Positions 7,669 to 46,695 of a stretch of 64,000 nucleotides of DNA are shown here, one piece after another. The stretch is from assembly GCF_006345805.1 (NCBI RefSeq), contig NC_043002.1:35154001-35218000 (forward strand), in the 5' to 3' direction. Source of the DNA: Octopus sinensis (lineage: Eukaryota). The position numbers were made by a program, and so were the translations under genes. The first letter of the stretch is position 1; every line of letters begins with the position of its first letter. The notes under the pieces were generated by a model. The model was not told the origin of the DNA. It did no database searches and saw only the letters and a list, made by a program, of their open reading frames with translations.

Positions 7669-8598
7669 TCATATGCCATCATAGCATGCTTTCCCACGAG
7701 AGTGGATACGTTTATGAGAAGATAAATTACAATTTTGAGAGAATGATTTCCCACAGATATCACAGCAGTATGGTTTTTTCCCTGTATGAACAAGTTTATG
7801 GTAAGACAAGCCACCACTCTGAGAAAATGTTTTACCACAAATATCACAATAATACGGGTTCTCTCCAGTATGGATTCGCCTGTGAGATATCAAGCTACCA
7901 CCCTGCGAAAATGTTCTACCACAGATATCACAGTGATATGGTTTCTCTCCTGTGTGAATACGTTTGTGAGAAGACAAACTGCCACTGTGAGAGAACATTT
8001 GACCACAGATATCACAGTGGTATGGTTTCTCTCCAGTGTGAACGAGTTTGTGGTAAGACAAACCACCACTCCGGGAAAATGATTTACCACAGATATCACA
8101 ACGATATGGGTACTCTCCCGTGTGTGTACGTTTGTGATAAGATAAACTACCATTCAGAGAGAATGTTTTACCACAGATATCACAATGATATGGTTTCTCC
8201 CCTGTGTGTGTACGTTTGTGATAAGATAAACTACCATTTACAGAGAATGATTTACCACAGACATCACAGTGATATGGTTTCTCACCTGTATGTATACGTC
8301 TGTGGGAAGATAAATTACTATTTTGAGAAAATGCTTTACCACAGATATCACAACAGTGTGGCTTTTCTCCTGTATGAATATGTTTGTGGAGAGACAAGGA
8401 ACGATTTGTAGTAAACTTTTTACCACAAACTTCACAGGGGTACAGCTTGGAGACTGAGTGATTTAATTTATGCTGAATTAAATTCTTTCTTGTTGTTAAT
8501 GATCTTCTGCATATATCACAAGGGTAGGATTTCTCTTTTGCATTTTCCTGTGTCTGGGTAGATGAGTCAATATACTCAAGCTTTGCTTTCTTATTCAT
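7669..8598 (-). CDS. C2H2 zinc-finger protein (ZNF-A), 10 tandem fingers, ~309 aa from the first ATG
   Basis: Ten CxxC-x12-HxxxH repeats with TGEKPY-type linkers. The track ORF starts at GTG 8613, but the first in-frame ATG is at 8598. Candidate acceptors: tttctatttcag| at 8727 and ataactcag| at 8625. Confidence 0.93.
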
Positions 8599-17770: not shown

Positions 17771-18319
17771 AATAATAATAATTCTGGGCCTTGTGCCTAG
17801 AGTAGAAAAGAATAATAATTCTGTTTTGCCATAGCAGGATCAACAAGTTGTTTAAACTCAATATGCATGGAGGTGTCTCAATGCCACCAATACCCTTGTT
17901 AACAATGCCATGCTCAGCCATGTCTGAATTACTTATTTTCTTAGTTTCTGGTGCCTAACAACCAACTTATCACAGGAAAGGTATCCAGCCTTAGAAAATC
18001 TGCCTCATCCAAGTCATGCAAGCATGGAAAAATAGACATTCAAATAATAATGATGATATACACACACACACACAATTTTTACATACAATGGGTTTCTGTA
18101 TAGTTTTGTCTACTACATTCAGTTCATATATTTATAAGGCATTGGTCAACCTGAGGAAGCTATAGCAGAAGAGAATTGCCCAAGAAGTTCTGCATGCAGT
18201 GGAAATGTACCCAAACCCAGAAAGTTTTGCAAAGCAAACTTATGAACCACATAGTCATGCTTGAACCTATATATATTAAATACTTATTATTAAACCCCTG
18301 AAAATGTGTTGTATAGGCA

Positions 18320-18490: not shown

Positions 18491-19174
18491 ACACACACAC
18501 ACACACACATAAAATCAATGAATATGAATAGAAATATTCTTCAAATTATGTTATGAACGTTTCCATAGAATGGTTATTTATTTGCATATTAATGTATTAC
18601 TTTGTGAAACCACATAACCAGACATTTTCACCACATATCTTTGTATAAATGACAGGTGTGTGTGTGTGTGTGTAATATTTATTCACTTATTATATTTTAC
18701 CTTGCAGTAAATGTGCAGCATATTGTTATTAAATACAATGGATTTACAGTGTGCTTAAGAATCATAAATTAACTAGTTAATTTTGCATTGTTTGTTTTAT
18801 TAACTGGCTGATAGACAGTAAGTATCATTGGTATTCTTCCAAAGTAACCTGTGAGCAGGAGTGCTACTGAGTTAATTGCCTGGATCTTATAGATCTCGAC
18901 TACCTGATATATATATATATAATGTGTGTGTGTGTGTATTTTTGTCTTCTTGACAGTGCACAATTGTTGTAAATGAATGTCATTTGTTTCCAATGTTCTG
19001 CAAAATCAGGTATGGCCATGGGAAAATATTACCTTGCTAAGAAACAAGGGTTGGTAATAGGAAGGGCATCTGGCCATAGAAAATCCACCTTAATAACCTC
19101 AGTCCAAGCCATGCAATAAAGGAAATGTGGACATTAAAATGATGATGAAGAGATGATAATGATTATTTAGTAAT

Positions 19175-21790
19175 TTAGTATATAAACTTAGACCCAAAGA
19201 TGTCTAAGTGGCCAAAAGCATTTGTCCCTCCACTGTTCCCACTGCCATCATAGTCAAAGTCATCTTTTTTCTTTTTTGTGCTGTCTTCATCTTTGACCTG
19301 TGATAATTTTTCCTTGAAATACCTTTCATTGTCTTTTGAAATTTCCTTTTGAAATCTTTCTGGAATTACAGATTTTTCAAGCAGTTCTTCTAGATTACAG
19401 CATAACTCACCTGAATCTAATAGTTCTTTTGTTACACGTCTATATATAAAAAAGTAAGGAGTGTCACTTTTTGATGATTTAAGTGTATCTGAAAAATTAT
19501 ACTTTGTTTCTGTCACAGATTCATCATTAAAAATATACCAGTTGTCTTTTAGTAAATTATTCAAGTTTGTATAATGTTCATTAATTAAACACGAATGTCG
19601 GGATAGCAATATACAATGTCCGGAATCACTGTTATAACCAGAATGAATAACAACAGAACACAGTACATAATTAATATCTTCCTCGACAACCAAACTCTCA
19701 TCATTTGTAGTGAAACATTTTAAACATAATTCTTTTGGATAATTGACATAAGCCATAATTTTAGACCGCTTTTTATTCTTTTTATTATAAGAAAATCTTG
19801 ATAAAGTTAGATTTAAATATTCTGGAGCGTCTATGAGGAAAACTTGTCGAATTCCATCACGATAATCATCACAGTTTGGACACTTAAATTGATTACTAAC
19901 CTTCAATTCTTCCACTGTGAAGTAATTCTGTATTAAGTCTCGAATATCGAGTTTATCATTTATATTTTTCTCTTCTTTCACCTCCTCCTCCTCATCATCA
20001 TCATGTGGTAATGCTAGGAGCAAAAACGAAAATCTTTCTTCGTATTTTGTTTCTGTTTGACATTTTAGACATCTTGTAGAGTTTCTGAGCTTACCAAAAA
20101 AATTTCTATCAATCAGCGTTCTTGATTTACTATCTACTATTTCGCATTTAGTTATCTCTCCCTTGTTTTTATCACTCAATGACTCTGTTTTCGTGCTGTT
20201 TTTCTTTTCTTCCTCATCAAAAGCATTCAGAAGATGTGACAAAAACTCTGCACAGTCTTGCTGCTCATATTTTGCAAACCACGAAGGATTAGCATTGCAA
20301 TAGAATTCTGATGGGTAAAAAGAAGGCCGTTGGCTTGATAGTAGATAGGAGAAAACTTCTTGTAGTTTGCTGATGATTCCACCAGGGGGCACTGGCATGC
20401 CTAATACCTCTTGTCTAAAATTATCCAACATAAAGAGCACCTGAATAGCTGAATTCATATAACACGAGTTTTTCACATTGCACAATCCAGTTTTGCGTGT
20501 TAGAGCCTTCTTAATTTCAAGAGGAGGAACAGTAAAATTTCTGCAATTACTAGTATTACATAACGCTGCAAGAGGTTTTACTTTATTTAATTGCAGTTCT
20601 TTGATTGAGAAACAAGTCTGTCTATATTTTATAAATGGTTCTTTAGAATGCCAATATATTTCCAACTCCATATTGGCCAATAAAATTTCAATGCATGCTA
20701 AACCTGTGCTGCTTTTTTCCTCTGCTAATATTGGAATGATGTCGACCAAAGACATTATCATGTGAGAGGTACTATCAGGACTCAGCTGTATCTTTGTATA
20801 TATATGTACCAAGATCTTAGCTGCAGATTCTCTAGAAGCAATGGGTTTCAGCATGTTGACTATGAAAACAATAGCCTCCTGAGCAATTTCTTTTAAAACT
20901 TCATCAAATCCTGCTGCTGCTAATTTTTCAAATATCCCAATTATCCATATATGTACTCGTTGAGAAAATGGCCAATCCAGCCAATGTAAAATTTGATAAA
21001 TTGTGTTGGAGATTCTAGGTTTATTAATTACATCAATATTAATTAAATCAATAATTTCTTCTACTGATTTAACTGGTATTTGGCTCAACGTTCCAAGACA
21101 GACAGCAGGACTGTCAAATGGCTGCGAAATTAAGGAAAACAGATAATGAACTGAATTTTTCTTTGTGTCATCATTAGAATTATTAGGAGTACAATTTTCC
21201 CATAATTGAAATAAAATTTGTCCAGCTGTATTTATAGTTTTAACTTCTTGTAAAAAATTAACTCCTTGTTTTGGTGTTCTAGTAACATATAAAATATCAA
21301 TGATCACACAACAGAAGTCATATCGTTGATAAACAGGAACACATTTAGGCTGTTTCATCAATAAAGAAAAGATTATAGCTAAACATTGTAAATTACTGTT
21401 CTGTTTTAAAAATATTGTGATTAATTGCTGGAAATATTTCACTAATGATGCATAGCATTCAGTACCTTTTAAAATTTGTAACGATTTTTCGATGATAACA
21501 ATGGCTGCTGTTGGATTTTGGTGTGAATTAATTAAGATATCATTCATTAAAACTTTGTTGAAATATTTTTGAAATATCTCTTCATTGTCTCTTGCCCAAT
21601 TTTCGTAAAGTCGAACACCGGATGTACATTGGAATGCAGTTTCTCCATCTAATGACCATTTTACAGCAAGGTTTAAAACTGGGACTGTGTCTTGTGCTGT
21701 TTTCGGTGATTTTAATATTTTTTGTAGAATTTTTTCTTTAAGTATATCTGGGTGATTAGAAACAAAAAGTCCTTGAAGAATTTGATCCAT
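19175..21790 (-). CDS. USP38: Ubiquitin C-terminal hydrolase, USP35/USP38 family, intronless CDS, 871 aa
   Basis: The N-terminus MDQILQGLFVSNHP resembles USP38 MDKILEGLVSSSHP. Also present: Cys box GLCNVKNSCYMNS, QQDCAEFL box, two CxxC zinc ligands (CLKC, CPNC), His box SVVIHSG...SGH, WYIFND, DTPYFFIY and a Gly-rich ...FGSKFIY end. USP35 cannot be told from USP38 by eye. Confidence 0.9.
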   Translation of the reverse strand: MDQILQGLFVSNHPDILKEKILQKILKSPKTAQDTVPVLNLAVKWSLDGETAFQCTSGVRLYENWARDNEEIFQKYFNKVLMNDILINSHQNPTAAIVIIEKSLQILKGTECYASLVKYFQQLITIFLKQNSNLQCLAIIFSLLMKQPKCVPVYQRYDFCCVIIDILYVTRTPKQGVNFLQEVKTINTAGQILFQLWENCTPNNSNDDTKKNSVHYLFSLISQPFDSPAVCLGTLSQIPVKSVEEIIDLINIDVINKPRISNTIYQILHWLDWPFSQRVHIWIIGIFEKLAAAGFDEVLKEIAQEAIVFIVNMLKPIASRESAAKILVHIYTKIQLSPDSTSHMIMSLVDIIPILAEEKSSTGLACIEILLANMELEIYWHSKEPFIKYRQTCFSIKELQLNKVKPLAALCNTSNCRNFTVPPLEIKKALTRKTGLCNVKNSCYMNSAIQVLFMLDNFRQEVLGMPVPPGGIISKLQEVFSYLLSSQRPSFYPSEFYCNANPSWFAKYEQQDCAEFLSHLLNAFDEEEKKNSTKTESLSDKNKGEITKCEIVDSKSRTLIDRNFFGKLRNSTRCLKCQTETKYEERFSFLLLALPHDDDEEEEVKEEKNINDKLDIRDLIQNYFTVEELKVSNQFKCPNCDDYRDGIRQVFLIDAPEYLNLTLSRFSYNKKNKKRSKIMAYVNYPKELCLKCFTTNDESLVVEEDINYVLCSVVIHSGYNSDSGHCILLSRHSCLINEHYTNLNNLLKDNWYIFNDESVTETKYNFSDTLKSSKSDTPYFFIYRRVTKELLDSGELCCNLEELLEKSVIPERFQKEISKDNERYFKEKLSQVKDEDSTKKKKDDFDYDGSGNSGGTNAFGHLDIFGSKFIY

Positions 21791-21926: not shown

Positions 21927-22084
21927 CTGAAATAGAGAAAAAGTAAACAATGTAGAGGATACTTAAAAATGGAAATTCAACAGTGGAAATTTTACTACAT
22001 ATCTATATTAGTAAGTTTTAGATACAGAAATTTATCTAAGTGACTGAAATATATTTTGTAATTTGTTATCAATATTATAACATA

Positions 22085-22480: not shown

Positions 22481-22769
22481 TAAAATCTTGATATCAATAT
22501 TATATCATAACACTGTGATGCCTACATATTTGCAGACTACAGCTACATCTCCAGAATGTGTAATATTACATATATCAATCTACAGAGCAGTGGGTACTGT
22601 AATTCTTCCTCCAGAAACATCATTACTTATCAGGAGGCTGAGGGCTCAGGGAAATGGTTCAATCCAACATACCTGGCACATTCTTGTCAAGGTCCTCTCT
22701 TTACTTACTCAGCACATACAACAGTCAACCTTGTCTCCATGAGAAAGAGCATATATTGCAACAATCCAC

Positions 22770-22942
22770 TATATTTTGCATTCATATGAATGATGGTGCA
22801 CTTGCAGTTAGTGATTCTGCAAAGAAAGAAGCTTGGAAGTGCCACTATGAAAGGCTGCAAAATATAGTGGATACAAGGGAGGAGAGCCTGCTTAATGTGG
22901 ATCAAATAGAGGGACTGGTTATCCACATCACCAGTAGCTTAG
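22770..22942 (+). mobile_element. RTE LINE ORF2 fragment (EN-RT linker)
   Basis: DGALAVSDSAKKEAWKCHYERLQNIVD...EESLLNVDQIEGLVIHITSSLV. Confidence 0.65.
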
Positions 22943-22944
22943 TA

Positions 22945-23192
22945 TGAGGTGGTACCAAAAGGTTCCCGGACAAGTTATATTTAATAAAAAATAACTTATT
23001 TACCTAAGTTCGTCATCTTCTAGGGATGTTCTGCTTTTCAAGCGCCTGTGCCACTCGAAACATTGTGTATGACCTATTGCCTCGTCGCTATATGCTTAAT
23101 GAAGTATGTTCAATGTCTCTGTAGCAGAGTTCCCAAGTTTAATGCAAAATTTCACATTGGCTCTTTGTCCCAACTTCCTGTCCATGATAAAA
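22945..23192 (-). mobile_element. Internally deleted mariner: transposase N-terminal HTH plus one TIR
   Basis: The minus strand reads MDRKLGQRANVKFCIKLGNSATETLNILH*AYSDEAIGHTQCFEWHRRLKSRTSLEDDE (mariner HTH). TA|TGAGGTGGTACCAAAAGGTTCCCGGAC is a TIR-like end at 22943. Confidence 0.8.
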
Positions 23193-23451
23193 GGATGGTT
23201 TATTCCACTTTTAAACTTGCATTTAATGTGACTATGTCTGACTCTGCAACTTGCAATATCAGCAAGGGCTGGGACAAAGCAAAAGTCCTGAGAAGGTACC
23301 AGCTCATTGTGTGGGATGAATGCACAATGGCCCATAAAGGATTCCTAGAGGCCCCAGATAGGACCCTACAAGATATCAGGGACTGTCACTGCCCAATAGG
23401 AGGTGTATCTCTCCTGCTATCTGGTGATTTTAAGCAAACTCTTTCTCTACC
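23193..23451 (+). mobile_element. Helitron PIF1-like helicase fragment
   Basis: STFKLAFNV...TCNISK...LIVWDECTMAHKGFLEAPDRTLQDIR...PIGGVSLLLSGDFKQTL covers helicase motifs II-III. Confidence 0.85.
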
Positions 23452-23870
23452 AAGCATTGAAGCCACCATTCTTCACCATTGCTTCTGATGGGCAGGTCAC
23501 GTCCAGCATATGGAGCCCTTTCATCTCCCAAAGATCATGCTCTACGGAGAACTTGCAATTGGAACAAGATGCAGAGGAGGCCCAAAATTCCTTTTTAAAG
23601 ACCAGCTCAAACAGACCTTGGCTCAAACTAACACCCATCCATCCTCATGGGAACAGATTGCCATGGATAGGACAACCTCAAAGACTACTATTCACAATAG
23701 AGCCAGCTCCTTCAAGCAGAACAGACAACAGAATGAGGTAAAACGCAGGAGAGGAAAGGAGCGTTTTCAACATCCTCGACCCGCACCGACCATCCTGTGC
23801 AAATTCTGCCCATGACTCTTTCACCACCAACTTGGACTCCAAAGTCACATTCAGCATAGACATGTCGAGG
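23452..23870 (+). mobile_element. RTE (BovB-like) LINE ORF2 C-terminus
   Basis: SIEATIL...WAGHVQHMEPFHLPKIMLYGELAIGTRCRGGPKFLFKDQLKQ...WEQIAMDR...CKFCP. Confidence 0.8.
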
Positions 23871-23999: not shown

Positions 24000-24955
24000 A
24001 TTCCATTCATTCCCCAGCTTAAAGAGACAAGCCCCATTCTGTGCTCAGGTCAAGGAATAGAATGCAACTGCCAATAACTGTACACCCATCAATACCTAGC
24101 ACCTTCCAGTTTGCCATTTTCTGCAAGGATTCCCTCACCTTCTCTCTTCCAACTGCACCATAGTTCCATTCCCCAACATGCATTCTCATCTCTCCTCCTA
24201 CAGCCACTATACTCGCCTCCCTAACATCCTCCACATTTAACAGCTCACTAAGATACTCTGCCCATCTCTTTTGTAGATCCTCACTTCCTTTCAACAAATT
24301 TCCATTTATATCCTTCATCCTGTCTTCCCTTCCTCCAACCTCCTTTTTTACCCTCTGTACCTCACACCCCATTCCAACCATATACTTCAGAGGCACATCT
24401 CATTACTGCCCCTCACTCCTCCTCATTTCCTACCTCCTGTTTCTCAACCTGGTCATATTTACCCATCAGTTTCTCTAAGTACTCCTGCTCCTTCTCTCTC
24501 CTATCCAGTTTACTCACCTTCACAACCTCTCTCTTCCCTGTAATTTGTCTTGTATACCAATTTAAACATACCTTCAACTTACCCTGTCCTAAGAAGTGAT
24601 CTGACACTCCTCCACCTCTCATTACATGCACATCCACCAACCTTCCTACCGCTCTCTTGTCAATTAATATATAATCCATCAAGACTCTATCCACTACGGT
24701 TCCTCCCTCCACCCGCTACCATGTGAACTTATTCTTCTCCCACTTTTTAAAAAGACTATTCCCTACCATCAACTCCTGCTCCACACACATTTCCAACAAC
24801 TTCCTTCCACTCTCATTCCAGCCAGGAACTCCATATTTTCTACTTTATCATCTTAGCTCACTCAACCATCTTGAGGCATATAAGAAACCTCATGTATCCT
24901 ACGTAAGGGATCTGCCTCTACCTTATAATCAGCTACCTATACTCCATTGACCATT
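24000..24955 (-). mobile_element. RTE-type LINE ORF2 endonuclease/linker fragment
   Basis: LMDYILIDKR...GVSDHFL (APE endonuclease C-terminal motifs) and MKDINGNLL...RWAEYLSELLNVED. Confidence 0.75.
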
Positions 24956-25222
24956 ACTCATTTTGTAATTATGATATATTCTCTAGAAGATAATTTTAAT
25001 AAATCAAGAATTTATGTTGTAGGTATTTCATACACTTGTATTTCTGTGTTGTTCAAATACACGCGACTGGCCATTCTGCGTTATTTCTTTTAGCTCGTCT
25101 TATTTAAATTATACATATGAATGTAGTCGGAATATGATCGTATAAAGTCAAACAGCACGAGGTCAATGAAAATCTCAACTTGTAACAATTATTCCTCTTA
25201 ACTTTTTTTTTTTTGGTATCAC

Positions 25223-25400
25223 CTAGCGGATAAATGACGAAATACAAAGGGGAAACAACTTTAAAATTTAAAACTTGTTAGTATAGAGCACTCACTGTTT
25301 ACATGTGAAAAGTTGACAAAGGTTGTGTGTAAACAATAGAGTTTTATGTCCCTTCGATGATGCGGTAATTATAATAGAAGTGAAATACATAACAATGGTG
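25223..25400 (-). promoter_or_regulatory. Putative non-coding first exon/promoter of the USP gene
   Basis: Minus-strand donor TAG|GTGATA (intron starts at 25222), in a locally CpG-richer stretch just beyond the TE block. Confidence 0.3.
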
Positions 25401-26339
25401 TGGGGGAAACTTATTTTCGTGTCCTAACTTTAACTTAAAGTATATAGTACTTTCTCCAAACTTAAATGTTGATTTGTTACTTTTGAAATCCCAAGTATAG
25501 TTGTTCCAAACAATAAAGTAAATTCTGTATTTTTCTTGAGTAAGAGGCTGGACAGTTACATGGAATCGAATTTTACTTCATTATACACTCTAACTTCTGA
25601 CATTGGCACAAAGCCACACATTTTGATAAAGTATATTAAATCCACTACAGTACTTGAACTGGTATCAAATTCATAAATATGGACATATAAAAATTATCAT
25701 GGTAGGAATTGAACTCAGAAAACAACAGGATGTAGCCTAATACTAATTTTACTATCCACTACCTTTTCGAATTAAATATAAACATGTACACAAGTACGCG
25801 TTCTCATTAAATGAAATCAACAATATTTCTTGATATATCAGATATTAAAAATATTTCTCAACCATATAAACACAGTTGTATATAATTAGTAGCATATATA
25901 CCTGGATCATGCCTCTCAGCAGTCAATAATGCATCTAGCGTCAATCCGTGTGTACCAATAATTTGGTAACAATAATTATAGCGTTAAATATAACTTCCTG
26001 TGCAAAGGGATATAACCGTTGACTTCTTGTAGGCGGTGACAAATTATACTTTTGGCGTATACTTAATTAATATCATATCTACGTCAAAAGCAGTATTGTT
26101 TTATTGTAAAGCAAAACTATTAATACTAATATGTGAATAAGAGGTGGATGTGGGATATATTGTAAAGTTCTAATATCGAAGAATATTTCGTAATTTCATT
26201 TAATATTGTTACTTTACAATGTATTTAATATTATCAGGTATGCAAACAAGAATAATTAAAAGGGTTAAAGTTAACACCTGGCCACCAAAACAATAAAAAA
26301 AAAAAAGTTTCACAAGTATAAGAAAATGTGTATAAAATG

Positions 26340-27209
26340 AATATGAAAACAAAAATTTGCGCTAACGAACCGGTGGGGGTGGGGTGAGGAGAGGACTTTC
26401 AGAAAATTCGCAATATCCGATTTCTTCCATCATAACTTTTAGGAAAATTGATATCTTTCAATGAAATTTTATATAAATTCCTTTCAAACGGCATATATTA
26501 CGATTATAAAGAAATTTGTGAGGAAAATATTTTCCCAGGGGGTGGGGAGAGGACTTTCGGAAAACTCACACGATCCGATTTTTTCCCTCATAACTTTTAG
26601 GGAAATGGATATCTTTTAATGAAACTTTATATAAAGACCTTTCAAATGGCAGAGATTACGATTATAAAGAAATTTATCGGGAATATTTTTTCAGAGGAGT
26701 GCGTTGGTGCATTTTTATACTGTAAAACATTGAACATAGCTCTTCTTACCTCCAACGGGGGAAATGTGCTACAAACAACAGCTAAATCGCCGTTAACTTT
26801 TTTCCATAGTGAAACCATATTCAACACCGTATTTATGAATTTATTTCTCTCACCATGATACATGGGATCTTTTAAAAACCTTTTTCTTTTACTCAAACGA
26901 AAAATAAATAAATCTAGAATATTTAAAAAAAAAATTTTTTTTCATTACTTTCAAGAAAAAAATAATTTATGAATTTCTTTCTCTTCGAAAGTCCTCTCCC
27001 CACCCTTCTGGAAATTTTTTTCCCCCCACAAATTTCTTTATAATCGTAGTCAATGCCGTTTGAAAAGATCCAGGCATTTATATAAAATTTTCTTAAAAGA
27101 AACCATTTTCCTAAAAGTTACGCGGGAAAAAATCGAATCTTGTGAATTTTCCGAAAGTCCTCTCTTCGCTCCCATCCGGTTCGTTAGCGCAAATTTTTCT
27201 TTTCATATT
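26340..27209. mobile_element. Foldback/MITE element with long TIRs built of ~160-bp subrepeats
   Basis: atatgaaaacaaaaatttgcgctaacgaaccgg ... ccggttcgttagcgcaaatttttcttttcatat. gaggactttc occurs at 26391 and 26549, and its reverse complement at 26987 and 27153. Confidence 0.85.
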
Positions 27210-28109
27210 TGTTTAATACTTACTTTGGCAAAAGTAAAAAATACGCACACCCGGTGTTTAGATTTAGGGTTAGGGTTTTTGCTACGCCGAAAACGGATGG
27301 TGTACGTTTTCTTTACCTCCGTGTATGGAATTTCCATGTTTTGAACACTTGAGATTCTAACTGAGCAAAACAAAAGTTGCCCCTACATCCCCTTTGTGAC
27401 AGCATTAAAAGTGATTAATTTGGAAAAATGATTTCTTTCAATTTATACAAATCGTCAGCACTATTATATGACTTGCACTTTTTCATTTTTCCAAATTCAT
27501 TTAATCTTAACACGAATATATGCTATATGGCATTGTGTATGGGGTTTACGATTAAGACTCCATCTGCATATAAAACAAAAAAAGCATATGTAGTGGATCT
27601 TGCAGGCATGATGTAGATTCGATCCTAGATAGCCAAATTTAAATTAAAGCTTCAACAGAACTTTTCTCACGGTAAAACAATAGTTTTTCTGTGACAGCAG
27701 TTTATATTTACCAGATGCCTTAGCTAAGCAAAATAATGTTTTTGCATTTGACTCTTCTAACCTCTTATAAGCCACCAAAAGCCAGATTTAAGATAACAAG
27801 TACCACCAATGAAATCTATTGTTCTCAACGATACGTCTATCCTTCTGGATAGTTATAAAAACAAGAACCCCCAAGCAAAATTCAGTTAATCGGTGAGTGA
27901 CAACTCGAGTGAGAGACAGCTACCATCAGTTAGTAAACGGACTGCTAGAATTATGGTCACAAGCAGGCAGCTACTATAGACAAATGGTCAGAGGGAGAAA
28001 GAAGTTTATGATCAGCAACTATGAGACACAACTTCCCTTAACTCTACAACTCTCACTGGCTCACTTTATTTTCTCTTACAACATCACTCTATTTCTATCT
28101 GTAATTTCT

Positions 28110-29488: not shown

Positions 29489-30634
29489 ATGGATGACGTT
29501 AATCACTTGGACACTTTAAACACAACAGATTCAGTTACACAGACACACAGCGATGGGAAGACTTTACGTAGTGAAACATTTACTAAACAAACATCATTAC
29601 ACGGAAATGTTAGTGAATATAGTTGTGAGATATGTAGGAAAACATTCTCCTCGGAACAAGAAGTCTTCGCACACAAAGAAATACACAATAAGGAAAAGCC
29701 ATACCAATGTGAAATATGTGGAAAATATTTTGTCAATAACAGTTGTTTGACGAGGCATAAAAGACTACATACTGGGGAAAAACCTTACTATTGTGAAATA
29801 TGTGGGGAATCTTTTATTCAGAATTCGTGTCTTGTTGCCCACAAACGTAGTCATACTGGAGAAAATCCGTTTCAGTGTGAAATATGCGGGAAATCTTTTC
29901 TGGATAATAGTAAATTAACAACACATAAACGAATTCACACGGGAGAGAAACCGTTTCGCTGTGACGTGTGTGGAAAATCTTTCACTCAGAATTCTCATCT
30001 TGTGGTTCATAAAATAATTCACACGGGGGAAAAACTCTATCAGTGTGAAATATGCGGGAAGTCATTTGTGTCTAACAGTAACTTGACAATGCACAAAATA
30101 ATACACTCGGGGGAAAAACCGTTCCACTGTGAAATCTGTGGGGCATCTTTCACTCAGAATTCTCATCTTGTTATTCACATACGTAGTCATACCGGCGAGA
30201 AGCTGTTTCACTGTGAAATCTGTGGGAAATCATTTATAAATAACAATCACTTAAAAAGGCATAAACGAATACATACAGGTGAAAAACCTTACCCCTGTGA
30301 AATCTGCGGAAAATCCTTTGTTGATAATAGCGATTTAACAAAACACAAACGAATTCACACGGGAGAAAAACCGTTCAGTTGTGAAATATGCAGGAAATCC
30401 TTCACTAATAATTCGAAACTTGTTATCCACAAACGTAGTCATACTGGGGAAAAGCCTTTCCGCTGTGAAATATGCGGGAAATCTTTCATTGAAAATTTTA
30501 AGCTTACAATCCACAAACGTAGCCACACTGGGGAAAAACCCTACCACTGTAAAATGTGTGAGAAATCTTTTGTATCTAATGATTACTTAAAAAGGCACGA
30601 ACAGATGCACATTGGTAGGAAAACTTTAAATTGA
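29489..30634 (+). CDS. C2H2 zinc-finger protein (ZNF-B), 12 tandem fingers, 381 aa
   Basis: Twelve CxxC...HxxxH repeats (mostly CEICGKSF) with HTGEKP linkers. Acceptor ttttcacatttctcag| at 29461, 27 nt before the ATG. Confidence 0.95.
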   Translation: MDDVNHLDTLNTTDSVTQTHSDGKTLRSETFTKQTSLHGNVSEYSCEICRKTFSSEQEVFAHKEIHNKEKPYQCEICGKYFVNNSCLTRHKRLHTGEKPYYCEICGESFIQNSCLVAHKRSHTGENPFQCEICGKSFLDNSKLTTHKRIHTGEKPFRCDVCGKSFTQNSHLVVHKIIHTGEKLYQCEICGKSFVSNSNLTMHKIIHSGEKPFHCEICGASFTQNSHLVIHIRSHTGEKLFHCEICGKSFINNNHLKRHKRIHTGEKPYPCEICGKSFVDNSDLTKHKRIHTGEKPFSCEICRKSFTNNSKLVIHKRSHTGEKPFRCEICGKSFIENFKLTIHKRSHTGEKPYHCKMCEKSFVSNDYLKRHEQMHIGRKTLN

Positions 30635-38503: not shown

Positions 38504-40024
38504 ATGTGTATATATTGCATTAAGAAAAGAAAAATTATGGAAAATATACCATATGAGAACAAGGTTAAATGCAAAACAGACTCTAAAAAAATCCGTTCTG
38601 ATGAGCTGCTGAAAGAAAGAGCAAAAACATCATTCCTCTGCAATAGCTGTGGAAAATCATTCTCTCAAAAATGTAATCTTAATATTCACAAACGCATTCA
38701 TACAGGAGAAAAACCATTTCACTGTGATTTCTGTGGTAAATCATTCGTTCAAATAAATCACTTAACTAAACATAAACGCATTCATACAGGGGAAAAGCCA
38801 TATAGTTGTAATTTCTGTGCTAAGTCATTCTATGGAAGTGGTGAACTAACCAAACATAAACGTATTCATACAGGAGAGAGGCCATATCACTGTGATATCT
38901 GTGGTAGATCATTCTCTGTAAATGATCACTTAACTAAACACAAACGTATTCATACAGGGGAGAAGCCCTTTCACTGTGATATCTGTGGTAAAGCATTCTC
39001 TTGTAATGGTGATATACCCATACACAAACGCTCTCATACTGGAGAGAAGCCATATGACTGTGATATGTGTGGTAAATCATTTACTACAAAAGGTCACTTG
39101 ACAACTCATAAACGCTGTCATACAGGAGAGAAACCACATCACTGTGATGTCTGTGGTAAATCATTCATTCAAAACTGTCAGTTAATTAGACACACACGCA
39201 TTCATACAGGAGAGAAGCCTTATCCTTGTGATATCTGTGGTAAATCATTTGCTGAAAATGCCCATTTAATTAATCACAAACGTATTCATACAGGAGAGAA
39301 GCCATATCACTGCCACATATGCAATAAGTCATTTTCTCGAAATGATCACTTCACTCAACACAAACGTATTCATACAGGAGAAAAACCATATCACTGTGAT
39401 ATCTGCGGTAAATCATTCTCTGTAAGTTTTCGGTTAAAAATTCACACACGTATTCATACAGGAGAGCAGCCATATCACTGTGATATCTGTGGTAAATCCT
39501 TCTCTGAAAAGGGTGACTTAACTAAACACAAACGCACTCATACAGGAGAAACCCCATTTCAGTGTGAAATCTGTGGTAAGGCATTTTCTAGAAATTCTAA
39601 TTTAACCACTCACAAACGTGTTCATACTGGTGAGAAACCATATCACTGTGATATCTGTGGTAAATCGTTCTCTCATGGAAATGTCTTAATTGCACACAAA
39701 TACATTCATACAGGAGAGAAACCATATCATTGTGATGTCTGTGGTAAATCGTTTTCTCAAGCAAGTCACTTAAGTAAGCACAAACATGTTCATACAGGTG
39801 AGAAGCCATATCATTGTGACATCTGTGGTAAATCATTCTCTGTTGGAAGTGCAGTAAGTGGACACAAACGTACTCACACAGGAGAAAAACCATATTGTTG
39901 TGATATCTGTGGAAAATCATTCTCTCAAACAAGTCATTTGACTGCTCACAGGCGTGTTCATACTGGAGAGAAACCATATCACTGTGATGTCTGTGGTAAT
40001 CATTCATTCAAAACTGTCAGTTAA
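38504..40024 (+). CDS. C2H2 zinc-finger protein (ZNF-C), 16 intact fingers then a frameshift; start at ATG 38504 or 38537
   Basis: [10 protein letters not shown]...HTGEKPY repeats. The frame breaks at ggtaatc (39995-40001) where paralogous fingers read ggtaaatc. Acceptor ctcttatttcag| at 38182. Confidence 0.9.
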
Positions 40025-40838
40025 TTAGACACACACGCATTCATACAGGAGAGAAGCCTTATCCTTGTGATATCTGTGGTAAATCATTTGCTGAAAATGC
40101 CCATTTAATTAATCACAAACGTATTCATACAGGAGAGAAGCCATATCACTGCCACATATGCAATAAGTCATTTTCTCGAAATGATCACTTCACTCAACAC
40201 AAACGTATTCATACAGGAGAAAAACCATATCACTGTGATATCTGCGGTAAATCATTCTCTGTAAGTTTTCGGTTAAAAATTCACACACGTATTCATACAG
40301 GAGAGCAGCCATATCACTGTGATATCTGTGGTAAATCCTTCTCTGAAAAGGGTGACTTAACTAAACACAAACGCACTCATACAGGAGAAACCCCATTTCA
40401 GTGTGAAATCTGTGGTAAGGCATTTTCTAGAAATTCTAATTTAACCACTCACAAACGTGTTCATACTGGTGAGAAACCATATCACTGTGATATCTGTGGT
40501 AAATCGTTCTCTCATGGAAATGTCTTAATTGCACACAAATACATTCATACAGGAGAGAAACCATATCATTGTGATGTCTGTGGTAAATCGTTTTCTCAAG
40601 CAAGTCACTTAAGTAAGCACAAACATGTTCATACAGGTGAGAAGCCATATCATTGTGACATCTGTGGTAAATCATTCTCTGTTGGAAGTGCAGTAAGTGG
40701 ACACAAACGTACTCACACAGGAGAAAAACCATATTGTTGTGATATCTGTGGAAAATCATTCTCTCAAACAAGTCATTTGACTGCTCACAGGCGTGTTCAT
40801 ACTGGAGAGAAACCATATCACTGTGATGTCTGTGGTAA
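39161..40838 (+). repeat. Exact tandem duplication of 839 bp (fingers 7-16)
   Basis: 39161-39999 and 40000-40838 are identical on base-by-base reading. 839 = 10 x 84 - 1. Confidence 0.93.
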
Positions 40839-40992
40839 ATCATTCTCTGTAAATGATTCCTTAACAACTCACAAACGTATTCATTCAGGAGAGAAGCCAT
40901 ATGACTGTGATATCTGTAGTAAATCATTCTCTCAAATAAACCACTTAACTAGACACAGACTTATCCATACAAGAGATGAAGCATCACTGTAA
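40000..40992 (+). pseudogene. Out-of-frame continuation of ZNF-C (duplicated fingers plus two terminal fingers)
   Basis: Open frame SFIQNCQ...HTRDEASL* in the shifted phase, with no ATG of its own. Confidence 0.8.
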
Positions 40993-43807: not shown

Positions 43808-46695
43808 CTATCTATCGATAGTGTTGTTGGATTGGCTCATAAGTCAATCGCCTTTTTTTATTGTTTATTAGAAAAGTTTTGTTTCAAATGTTTGCACATG
43901 AGGTGTGTAAGACATCCAGCTTTCGTCTGGGTGTGTTTTCCGGAGGGGGAATTTGCCCCTAGGGGCAATTTCAGCCCTGTTTTCATACCAAAATATTGCT
44001 TCTCCAGATTTTTTACATATGTTGCCGAAGCGTTTCGTCTAAAGTATAAGCATTATCATCTGCTTGATGTTTTGTTTACATTTCTTTTTTGTTTTGAAGT
44101 TTTCAAGCGCCCAACTTTCGTTTGGGTATTTTTAAGTGTGGAATTCGCCCCTAGGGGAATTTACATCACCCTTTTAATTCTAAAGTTTATTTCTCGATGA
44201 TAAAAATGTCGAGAAATTTGATTGTTAAACAGTATTCGACACTATTCTCTGAAGAAGATTTTCCCAGCCTAGGAATGACAGAAGGAAGAATAGACGATAC
44301 TGTAAAGTCGAGAACAAAGTTTGAAAGAGACATTGCTGTCAACAACAAAGATATTTCTACAACCCTTGATAGCCCTGTCATCACCACCACCAAAACTACC
44401 ACATCTACGTGCTAAAATATGAAAATTAAAGAGCATACAAACTGGGGTCCCCAATTTAACATGGTACAGGTCTGCTTCCATAATCAGGAAGAGGCAAAAA
44501 CTCACTCGACACGGACAATACAAAATGACGAACTCGTCATGGTCCCATACCACATGGGACAGAGAGTGAGTAAAATAAAAATAAAGAATGTCCCACCCGA
44601 AATCCAACCAAAATGGATAACATCGGCAATATGTTTTCATTTAAAATCGATCAACATATTAGAAATTGCCATTGTTAACAATGAAAATTGGACTGGGAAA
44701 TCGATAGAAGTGACCATTCAAATAGATGAAGCTTCTATCAGGAAATTACTAAATATCATTTACCTAGAAAATGGACAAAGCCTATATGTGGTGGCAGAGG
44801 GGGAAAAAACCGCATTGTTACCTCTGTGGCAGCCCAGACCACTTAATTGCAAAGTGCGTTTTGGCACATAAAACACAAGAACAGTTGAAAACAAATAGAA
44901 AACACCCTTTGCAATCAATACCACCAAACCCACAACTGATGCAAGAATTATATAGGAATATGGAACAACAACAAACTAGCAACCAAAACTCAACAACATC
45001 ACCAAGAAGAGAAACAACACCATCACAATTACCTCCGACGTCACAACCAACTAAAACAACACCAACATCAAAAGACAGACCAGCACCAAGAACGACAACT
45101 AAGAAAACAAATAACAATGACGAAAAGACAAATTTTGCCCCTAATACCACAACAACACTTTCTACAAACACACATATAGATGCAAATGCTTTACCTTAAC
45201 CCCCTTCTGATTCATCACAGCAAATAAAAAACTAATGAACTACATTACATCTAACACAAACATTTGTGAAGATGACTTTAAACTGAACAATCATCCACGC
45301 ACTACACCACCGACACACATAAAAATAGTACGCAGCACCACACACTCAAAACCATCTTTTCAAATGTGGTCGGGGGGTTCCAGAAATATTTATCTAAAAA
45401 ACTTTATAAAAACCTCCTCAAAGACATTTCAAAAGAAGAGGAAACAACTCAAACTTTCAAAATGAGTAAGTAACCTTGTCTCTTTCACTGTTGTGTGAAA
45501 CACAACTTTTTGACCATCAATTATGCTTAAATTAGGTTGTGTTAGGAAGGGTATCCAGCCGTAGAAACACTGCCAGATCTGACTGGGCCTGATGAAGCCT
45601 TCCAGCTTCACAGACCCCAGTTGAACCGTCCAACCCATGCTAGCATGGAGAACGGACGCTAAATGATGATGATGATGATGAATGTGTGTGGTTTGGCGTC
45701 GGCTCAGAAGCAAGGTTACCTTCTAAATGACATCAAGTCACTGAACGTTGATATAGTAGCTATCAGTGAAACCAGACTCAGTAAGCCGTGGGCCCTCGCG
45801 TCCATGTTTGGCAGTCAATTCGACATTTATTTTTCTCCCTGTCTGCCAAACATGGCTGGTGGTGGTACCGTGGCGCTTTTTCGAAAGAGTCTAAACGTAA
45901 AAGTAAGATCGATATTCCTAGACCCGGAGGGTAGGCTGGTTGTCTTGGACGTGGATGGCAGAAACGGGCGTGCATGCCTGAGATGCGGTCAGAGCGCCGA
46001 AACTGTTCTGCACGCAGTCGTGCAGTGTCCAGATATTTCAGAGCTGTGGACCTTCGTCGAACAGCTGTTGTTGCGTGTAGGATGGACCCACTTATCGGCC
46101 GAGTCTATTGTGAATATTGTTCCGCCACCTTCCTTTAAATGGGAGGGAAAAGCAGTTTTCATAACACTGATAGCTAAGGCGAAAGAATGCGTGTGGTGGA
46201 TACGTTTGAAAGGCCTACAAACACTTTCCTCTCTGGTCAGTCTCTAATCAACTTTTTGAAGTACCACTTGAAAAGGAGGATGAGAATAGAGAGGAAAGTA
46301 TTGTCGAATGAAAGTTTCAATAAAAAATGGGTAAATGTGGCAAGAATGGTCAGTATGAAAGACGACACCATTTTAAGCATAAATCTGTAACAAAAAGAGA
46401 CAACAAGAGGAAAGGTACTTACTCTTGTGTACATTTTGAACTGCCTGAGGTGAACTTGGTCTTTTTCATAGGTTTTTCTTTCCAAGGCTACATCTAAACT
46501 GAACAATATCGATCTCCCCCTCTTTTTGGGGGGAACTTTATATTTTTCTTTTTTATACACCACATAACCCAAAGATCCCTATTGATCGAACTTTTTCTTT
46601 GTGTGTCCCACCCATCCCACCTTGAAAAGAAAAACTCTACATTGCATTTCGTCTATTTTCTGTATTTAGCTCTGTGTGACCATAATAAAAACAAA
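43808..46695 (+). mobile_element. Tx1/L1-clade LINE with decayed ORF1 and internally deleted ORF2, 7-bp TSD CATCTAT
   Basis: ORF1 remnant 44206-45199 carries a CCHC knuckle CYLCGSPDHLIAKC. ORF2 start MLKLGCV/NVCGL...VDIVAISETRL (APE) is joined to CLRCGQSAETVLHAVVQC (C-terminal zinc motif). AATAAA at 46684; catctat at 43801-43807 and 46696-46702. Confidence 0.88.
45544..45680 (+). mobile_element. 5'-truncated RTE-tail SINE inserted in Tx1 ORF2
   Basis: aggaagggtatccagccg...gctaaatgatgatgatg interrupts ATG CTT AAA TTA GGT TGT GTT / AAT GTG TGT GGT. Confidence 0.85.

Follow-up and report, generated by a model that had tools for sequence, protein, structure and literature searches.

Does a deubiquitinase gene of the USP35/38 type, lying intronless among C2H2 zinc-finger (ZNF) genes of the octopus, represent an extra gene of that lineage, or is it the octopus form of a gene shared with other animals? 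The question is raised by one open reading frame (ORF) in a window of 64 kb, the whole stretch of DNA analysed here. The original prediction, made from the letters of the window, described this ORF as a retrocopy that might act on, or be co-regulated with, the ZNF repertoire. We therefore considered the identity of the gene, its copy number, its ancestral exon structure and its surroundings.

Results

A complete USP35/38 ortholog in a single exon

The octopus deubiquitinase (DUB) is encoded, as predicted, by a complete and uninterrupted ORF: a single intact frame at 19175–21790 on the minus strand, with an ATG start and 871 codons plus stop, all in one exon. No other ORF of the window comes near it in length, the runner-up being a ZNF ORF of 506 aa. 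The alignment with PDB entry 4rxx (USP38 N-terminal domain; E 1e-20) begins at residue 1, and we therefore take the ATG at 21790 to be the true start. The open frame around the DUB comprises 885 aa, just 14 codons beyond this ATG, and in-frame stops lie farther upstream, which makes an upstream coding exon impossible. Vertebrate USP35 and USP38 have about 1000–1050 aa.

The domains of the family are all present. Residues 45–370 (20681–21658, minus strand) correspond to the USP38-like N-terminal helical domain, matched by PF21246 (E 2.8e-35) as well as by 4rxx, and residues 434–783 (19442–20491, minus strand) to the USP (peptidase C19) catalytic domain, matched by PF00443 (UCH; E 8.9e-39) and by the human USP35 catalytic domain (PDB 5txk; E 4.7e-44). 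The fold is settled by 4rxx and 5txk, the best PDB matches. A C-terminal tail, residues 791–871 (19178–19420, minus strand), was delimited in an alignment of 11 orthologs; near its end it is rich in Gly, and its terminal motif, G-x-K/R-F-I/V-F/Y, is kept from amphioxus to octopus. In the same alignment of 11 bilaterian orthologs, the columns of the catalytic triad (Cys443, His725 and Asp756) and of the zinc ribbon (Cys574/577/637/640) were invariant, and the octopus protein retains every one of these residues, in agreement with the original assignment. By homology, the triad is predicted to cleave ubiquitin from substrates as a papain-like cysteine isopeptidase. The four-Cys zinc ribbon would steady the "fingers" that grip ubiquitin, while the helical N-terminal domain and the conserved C-tail would supply contacts with partners or substrates.

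The best library matches of the DUB, from Lottia, scallop, amphioxus, Lingula, a nemertean, Saccoglossus and vertebrates, were all named USP35/38 or USP35/38-like. NCBI gives the name USP38 or USP38-like to near-identical Octopus proteins and to an Argonauta protein of 73–76% identity, and a USP38 annotation is already present in Octopus bimaculoides, O. vulgaris and Argonauta hians. Judged from its sequence, the DUB is thus clearly the octopus ortholog of bilaterian USP35/38, an ordinary enzyme that had been annotated before, and the idea of an undescribed system has to be given up.

Strong divergence with unusual residues beside the active site

The strong divergence noted at the outset was borne out. 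The octopus protein is 29% identical to that of scallop, compared with 40–47% for other invertebrates among themselves, and across all non-cephalopod orthologs the identity stays at only about 29–32%. In trees, in which each contig was represented by its single best uninterrupted stretch and exons were not joined, Octopus, Argonauta and a cephalopod-like protein formed one clade with 100% support. The stem branches of this clade are very long, and the long branch blurs its position within protostomes.

The octopus DUB has altered 17% of the columns that are invariant in the other nine species. Unusual residues surround its active site. The Cys box reads Val439-Lys440, with Lys440 in place of a near-universal Gly; the catalytic His is followed by Cys726-Ile727 instead of Tyr-Tyr, Cys726 replacing Tyr at a near-universal position; and Ser758 replaces Arg. 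Motif counts over about 100–125 other family representatives did not find Lys440 or Cys726, both of which are common to Octopus and Argonauta. With these two residues near the active site, full DUB activity is not certain.

Within octopods, four proteins from Octopus spp. and Argonauta preserve an intact, colinear frame, in DNA that at our locus has a G+C content of 33%. At the protein level, conservation tracks the functional regions: Octopus and Argonauta share 86% identity over the Cys-box part and 85% over the C-tail, compared with 39% over the variable insert.

The only USP35/38 gene in the assembly

We searched the octopus genome with the whole protein, each of its halves and PF21246, and also with P0010, a cephalopod homolog that is less diverged, and with a family profile built from 11 species. 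For every query the window locus was the only full-length or N-terminal-domain match, the remaining matches being catalytic-motif exons from other USP paralogs. No second USP35/38 copy, parent or relic was found in the 2.72-Gb assembly (13,516 contigs). These searches began with a stricter first look, so that a multi-exon parent might conceivably have escaped them in an assembly gap. Two weaker candidates were rejected: the PF21246 match on contig 1 (21 bits, E 0.19) turned out to be AT-rich noise interrupted by a stop codon, and a 52-aa cluster member (P0160), considered as a possible exon, is unrelated to the USP35/38 family. The family itself was found in every bilaterian group sampled. The original prediction had envisaged a lineage-specific additional DUB, with an intron-containing parent or further intronless paralogs to be sought in the genome; what we found is a single gene, the ortholog of the bilaterian one. 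Among other DUB genes, contig 4 of the octopus genome carries, at 90255276–90266600, a single-exon gene of the USP34/USP24/USP9X type that encodes 3775 aa.

Six ancestral introns are absent from the octopus gene

To map the introns of the family, the scallop protein was compared by tblastn with genomic contigs from metagenomes. Six GT-AG introns proved common to invertebrate relatives, at scallop residues ~314, 348, 396, 465, 496 and 910. The breaks, recognised by GT donors, pyrimidine-AG acceptors and gaps full of stops, are shared by lophotrochozoan-like contigs (L016, L017, L018 and L021) and by deuterostome-like ones (L019, L020, L022, L026, L027 and L029). Vertebrate-looking contigs with USP35/USP38-like genes (L023–L025 and L033) were excluded as possible human or other vertebrate contamination. 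One further contig, L012, clusters with scallop inside the mollusc clade of the tree; it has an acceptor at its very start, exactly at position 496, and at 910 a GT donor is followed 370 nt farther on by the last exon, which documents two of the six introns in a mollusc-like contig. By these comparisons, the bilaterian ancestor of USP35/38 had at least seven coding exons.

In the octopus, the equivalents of the six sites (residues 310, 344, 393, 457, 487 and 826) all fall inside the one ORF. Since six ancient introns are missing, the intronless coding region is derived, and of the type that an RNA intermediate would leave. The notion of a retrocopy thus survives as regards the derived, intronless state, but not as regards an additional paralog beside its parent. 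A sole ortholog that is intronless and syntenic in other molluscs too had been named as the outcome that would speak against it: the octopus gene is indeed the sole ortholog, but its relatives, including the mollusc-like contig, are not intronless. In the literature we found nothing specific on the intron structure of USP35/38 or on octopus retrogenes, only general precedents.

A ZNF neighbourhood and a candidate 5′ region

C2H2 arrays lie on either side of the DUB, as had been described. An array of 10 fingers flanks it at 7702–8520 (minus strand), one of 12 fingers stands head-to-head with it at 29624–30610 (plus strand), and a third with 27 finger motifs follows at 38639–40968 (plus strand). 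The DUB is surrounded by ZNF genes expanded in the lineage and by fragments of transposons, and old neighbours are not recognisable. On the lophotrochozoan-like contig L018 (48 kb), USP35/38 lies next to genes for a TANC1-like ankyrin NTPase and a short-chain dehydrogenase, which we judged too lineage-specific for a comparison of micro-synteny.

Between the DUB and the divergently oriented ZNF array, the CpG observed/expected ratio is near 1 at 25100–27500 (no strand assigned) and peaks at 1.72 at 26900–27199; by inference, this stretch is a candidate promoter or 5′-exon region. A pyrimidine tract with AG at 21927–21928 forms a candidate 3′ splice site of a putative 5′-UTR intron (21927–21950, minus strand), 136 nt upstream of the ATG and separated from it by in-frame stops. 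On the other side, the 3′ flank becomes repeat-like directly after the stop codon, and neither a poly(A) remnant nor a target-site duplication was seen in the 2.6 kb past the stop. An event older than the Octopus–Argonauta split would be expected to have lost such hallmarks by now, but their lack means that retroposition is unproven.

Discussion

How did the octopus gene come to be intronless? We consider it probable, at about 0.6, that all introns were lost through an RNA intermediate with retrogene replacement as the likeliest course, making the DUB an "orphaned retrogene". Six ancient coding introns would have vanished together on the lineage to octopods, and a joint loss of this kind is the hallmark of reverse transcription from an mRNA. 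The retrocopy would have landed in the present C2H2-ZNF cluster, obtained a promoter there, perhaps together with a 5′ non-coding exon, and taken over from the multi-exon parent, which was then lost. As the protein evolved rapidly along the stems of cephalopods and octopods, the odd residues beside the active site would have become fixed, with purifying selection on the DUB thereafter.

The gene might also have lost its introns without ever moving, if cDNA made from its mRNA recombined into the parental locus and thereby removed all the coding introns, possibly sparing a 5′-UTR intron, and the ZNF genes expanded around the DUB afterwards. Such a course would suit the simultaneous absence of all six introns, the failure to find a parent or relic elsewhere and the lack of retroposition hallmarks past the stop, and the acceptor-like site above the ATG would fit conversion by cDNA, from which the 5′-most intron tends to escape. 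We nevertheless hold it to be unlikely, if worth serious consideration: one conversion tract removing six introns over about 2.5 kb of mRNA would be rarer than retroposition, the surroundings are expanded ZNF genes and transposon fragments rather than old neighbours, and the acceleration on the stem is seen more typically where a gene has entered a new regulatory environment. That molluscs or cephalopods had a single exon from the start, and that the introns elsewhere are gains, is hardly plausible, even if the present locus is the sole cephalopod gene structure inspected. The six positions are common to lophotrochozoan-like and deuterostome-like contigs, and it is very unlikely that introns were gained in parallel at exactly these places; the two introns of the contig grouping with scallop contradict the idea for molluscs as a whole.

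An extra lineage-specific retrocopy beside an intron-containing parent, acting on or co-regulated with the ZNF repertoire, is now very improbable. It would explain an intronless coding exon between ZNF arrays and head-to-head with one of them, the CpG-rich stretch in between and the changed surroundings of the active site, but the whole-assembly searches largely refute it, and the protein keeps all family hallmarks down to its C-terminal tail. Its functional tie to the ZNF genes had adjacency as its only ground, and with three arrays in 64 kb adjacency is weak evidence; we find no support for a DUB–ZNF functional module, nor is the DUB a new system. Decay might be suspected from the very long branch, the share of invariant columns that have changed and the replaced Gly and Tyr beside catalytic residues, yet a non-functional processed pseudogene that is still open by chance is scarcely credible: an 871-codon frame has stayed intact in AT-rich DNA and colinear between Octopus spp. 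and Argonauta at 73–76% identity, conservation is concentrated in functional parts, and the odd active-site residues are themselves kept between the two genera, all this in the sole octopus member of a family present throughout the bilaterian groups sampled. An enzyme rewired after its arrival in the ZNF cluster, a cephalopod-specific variant that combines a bidirectional promoter shared with a C2H2-ZNF gene and a changed specificity or regulation, strikes us as improbable. Lys440, Cys726-Ile727, Ser758 and the diverged N-terminal domain would then alter specificity or regulation, for example through redox control via Cys726 or a different ubiquitin-like substrate, and the 3775-aa single-exon gene would add a case for repeated RNA-mediated remodelling of octopus DUB genes.

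Under retrogene replacement, the novelty of the locus is modest: it is a clean candidate for a cephalopod case in which a retrogene replaced a conserved enzyme of the housekeeping type, and few such events are documented. The reconstructed ancestral seven-exon structure of USP35/38 is also new. The octopus DUB offers a natural experiment on the fate of a gene after the loss of its introns and probably of its regulatory setting, and the two fixed substitutions next to catalytic residues that it highlights are easy biochemical targets.

Comparison with known systems places the DUB beside vertebrate USP35 and USP38 (C19), with which it shares the Usp38-like_N and USP domains, the triad, the zinc ribbon and the C-tail; it differs in being shorter, in its identity of about 29–32% to non-cephalopod orthologs and in its intronless coding region. 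The Drosophila counterpart of USP35/USP38 is DUBAI. As to its history, the gene resembles AmphiSYCP1 of amphioxus, a retrogene replacement beside the ParaHox cluster that acquired new 5′ non-coding exons (PMC5803294). Both have a single coding exon where their relatives are multi-exonic, neither has a parental copy left, and both adjoin a cluster of developmental or transcription-factor genes; a 5′ non-coding exon or a shared promoter is possible in the octopus, where relocation, 5′ exon and expression are putative, unlike in amphioxus. Mammalian Usp26 is a single-coding-exon retrogene of Usp37 with non-coding exons before its ORF (PMC6760205). Like the octopus DUB, it holds a whole USP-family ORF within one exon, in its case through retrotransposition. 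USP29 is likewise a USP37 retrogene, located in the PEG3/ZIM zinc-finger gene region. Usp26 and USP29, which belong to another USP subfamily, live alongside their parent USP37, whereas the octopus DUB appears to have outlived its own.

An intact USP35/38 gene encoded by a single exon

The longest ORF of the 64-kb window is an 871-codon frame with an ATG start (19175-21790, minus strand), the runner-up being a 506-aa zinc-finger ORF. At a local G+C content of ~33%, such a length is by our estimate far beyond chance. By Pfam, residues 45-370 match the USP38-like N-terminal domain (E 2.8e-35) and residues 434-783 the USP/UCH catalytic domain (E 8.9e-39), and the best solved relatives were the catalytic domain of human USP35 (5txk, E 4.7e-44) and, for the N-terminus, the N-terminal domain of human USP38 (4rxx, E 1e-20), aligned from residue 1. 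In an 11-species alignment, Cys443, His725 and Asp756, as well as the zinc-ribbon Cys574, 577, 637 and 640, fell in invariant columns. These results confirmed the original prediction of a complete, uninterrupted 2.6-kb ORF for a USP35/38-type deubiquitinase that has kept its triad and zinc ribbon. By homology, the protein would be a cysteine deubiquitinase of this type, with the helical N-terminal domain and the C-terminal tail as putative interaction modules. Since the 4rxx match starts at residue 1, the frame upstream of the ATG is open for 14 codons only (with in-frame stops beyond) and the C-terminal tail is conserved across bilaterians, we conclude that a single exon encodes the entire protein. 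For the non-coding upstream exon that had also been predicted, the sequence offers a candidate acceptor-like site at 21927-21950 (minus strand).

The gene is real, intact and previously annotated. Database records hold the exact protein or ones 94-98% identical, among them two entries titled 'ubiquitin carboxyl-terminal hydrolase 38', from Octopus bimaculoides (XP_014773420.1) and O. vulgaris (CAI9724624.1), and a colinear Argonauta hians protein shares 73-76% identity. Rather than the undescribed system that had been proposed, it belongs to known kinds, namely the USP35/38 family and, probably, orphaned retrogenes. The O. vulgaris record, an 842-aa model, differs from the other octopod proteins solely in its last ~40 residues, past a Lys-rich stretch; this looks like a homopolymer-run frameshift or an annotation slip, not biology.

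Two substitutions lie close to the catalytic residues. The octopus Cys box reads N-V-K-N-S-C, with Lys440 at a position occupied by Gly in 100 of 104 related representatives, and next to the catalytic His stands Cys-Ile in Octopus and Cys-Thr in Argonauta, against Tyr in 125 of 125 representatives. Octopus and Argonauta share both changes, which are absent from P0010, an unnamed, much less diverged cephalopod-like homolog. Lys440 and Cys726 may affect activity or regulation.

Copy number and evolutionary rate

We searched the full 2.72-Gb assembly with six queries: the full protein, its N-terminal half, its catalytic part, the Pfam N-terminal-domain model PF21246, P0010 and a profile of 11 bilaterian orthologs. 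The window locus was the sole full-length or N-terminal-domain match, and the remaining matches were short exons that carry the catalytic motifs of other USP paralogs; a weak PF21246 match elsewhere was dismissed as noise. Within the bounds of the assembly, and with a stricter first look in some searches, none of the six found an intron-containing parent, an additional retrocopy or a recognisable relic. The gene is the sole USP35/38 ortholog in this genome, and not, as predicted, an extra copy beside an intron-containing parent.

Among 1.84 billion representatives scanned, 95 proteins matched at E <= 1e-30. The best named matches were USP35/38 or USP35/38-like proteins from Lottia, scallop, two other gastropods, Lingula, a nemertean, amphioxus, Saccoglossus, echinoderms, tunicates, chelicerates, a priapulid, a jellyfish and vertebrates. 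P0010, which is full-length with the same C-terminal tail, joined Octopus and Argonauta in a single clade (100% support) in maximum-likelihood trees. Its stems were very long, the common stem measuring 0.7-1.06 substitutions per site and the octopod stem 1.2-1.76, with tips of only 0.13 (Octopus) and 0.18 (Argonauta). One tree apparently grouped the clade with chelicerates, the outcome expected from long-branch attraction. The octopus protein is 29% identical to scallop, versus 40-47% for other invertebrates, and columns invariant in nine non-octopod species were kept by octopods at 82-83%, by P0010 at 79% and by every other species at 90-98%. The strong divergence noted originally is therefore correct, and true of cephalopods as a whole. 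Octopus and Argonauta are 86% identical in the Cys-box part, 85% in the C-tail and 39% in a variable insert, a pattern suggestive of a constrained gene.

Loss of six ancient introns

Scanning metagenome contigs with the family alignment yielded genomic fragments of animal USP35/38 genes. Exons were never joined, every tree row being a single uninterrupted stretch, and vertebrate-like contigs (L023-L025 and L033, possibly human-derived) were excluded. In one contig after another, tblastn alignments of the scallop protein were interrupted at identical residues (~314, 348, 396, 465 and 496), with GT donors, pyrimidine-AG acceptors and stop-filled gaps. In each of the eight contigs inspected, a sixth break at ~910 carried a CAG|GTRAGT-type donor; in four of them (L012, L018, L019 and L021) the last exon was recovered 370-850 nt downstream. 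In the tree, L016, L017, L018 and L021 fell among lophotrochozoans and L019, L020, L022, L026 and L027 among deuterostomes; L029, with introns at ~314, 348 and 396, lay outside the tree, and its nearly equal bit scores for Saccoglossus and scallop would fit either side. As the same breaks occur in both groups, the six introns predate the protostome-deuterostome split. L012, which adjoins scallop inside the mollusc clade, starts with an intron end (tttcag) directly before the codon for residue 497 and carries the donor at 910 and then the last exon, indicating that a mollusc-like genome retains at least two of them. Three uninterrupted contigs (L010, L011 and L014) are most likely transcripts, since they are near-identical to the intron-containing L026, L019 and L020.

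The equivalent octopus sites (residues 310, 344, 393, 457, 487 and 826) all lie within the single ORF; the intronless coding region is thus a derived state, as viewed in this Octopus genome, the one cephalopod exon structure considered.

Two further loci were observed alongside. In the lophotrochozoan-like L018, a TANC1-like ankyrin NTPase in a single ORF (863 aa, L018:1647-4238, minus strand) and a short-chain dehydrogenase (260 aa, L018:5445-6227, plus strand) precede the multi-exon USP35/38 gene. Contig 4 of the octopus assembly holds an uninterrupted 3775-codon frame of 11.3 kb (G000:C4:90255276-90266600, minus strand; loci L007 and L008) encoding a giant USP34/USP24/USP9X-type deubiquitinase with ARM_UBP24_USP9X-Y, UCH and DUF3517 domains. 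In vertebrates, such genes are split into dozens of exons, and the other octopus DUF3517 matches (contigs 10 and 18) are broken into short exon-like stretches; this may be a second intronless octopus deubiquitinase gene.

Genomic surroundings

As predicted, the gene is embedded among C2H2 zinc-finger (ZNF) genes, with arrays on both sides: 7702-8520 (minus strand), 29624-30610 (plus strand, head-to-head with the deubiquitinase gene) and 38639-40968 (plus strand). The 27 finger motifs of the last extend beyond the 506-aa ORF (38504-40024) and represent either two neighbouring ZNF genes or a single array with a frame break. Between the deubiquitinase gene and the head-to-head array, CpG observed/expected is near 1 at ~25.1-27.5 kb, making this stretch a candidate shared promoter. 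For the suggested co-regulation with ZNF genes, or action on their products, the one supporting observation is adjacency, which carries little weight because the window is so rich in ZNF arrays (three within its 64 kb).

A PIF1-like helicase fragment (PF05970, E 4.8e-18; 23048-23488, within 22500-23800, plus strand), 1.3-1.7 kb upstream of the start codon, is most likely a Helitron remnant. A 194-aa ORF (45663-46247, plus strand) with weak endonuclease/exonuclease/phosphatase family and zf-RVT matches is probably a decayed fragment of a LINE-type retrotransposon, the class of element that supplies the reverse transcriptase for retrocopies. Two similar repeat copies in direct orientation (19000-19160 and 17990-18070, minus strand), one beginning right after the stop codon, are apparently a short interspersed element. 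At 24001-26000 the GC skew is strongly negative (-0.37 over 2 kb); no tandem array accounts for it other than small repeats (25909-25945 and 26381-26675).

Origin of the intronless gene

We infer that octopus USP35/38 lost its six ancient coding-region introns via RNA: they are gone across the whole message with nothing else lost, which fits a reverse-transcribed mRNA. This loss would also fit a cDNA of the original gene having converted its own locus, an explanation that we hold to be possible but distinctly less probable than retrogene replacement, in which a retroposed copy settles elsewhere and the parent is then lost (probability roughly 0.6). Such replacement is favoured by the lineage-expanded ZNF genes and transposon debris around the gene and by faster evolution along the stem, as is typical when a gene relocates. 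Neither a poly(A) tract nor a target-site duplication is left in the 2.6 kb past the stop codon. Precedents for the proposed retrogene route are amphioxus SYCP1, a retrogene replacement beside the ParaHox cluster that gained new 5' non-coding exons and uses its neighbour's bidirectional promoter (PMC5803294), and, within the USP family, mammalian Usp26, derived from Usp37 (PMC6760205).
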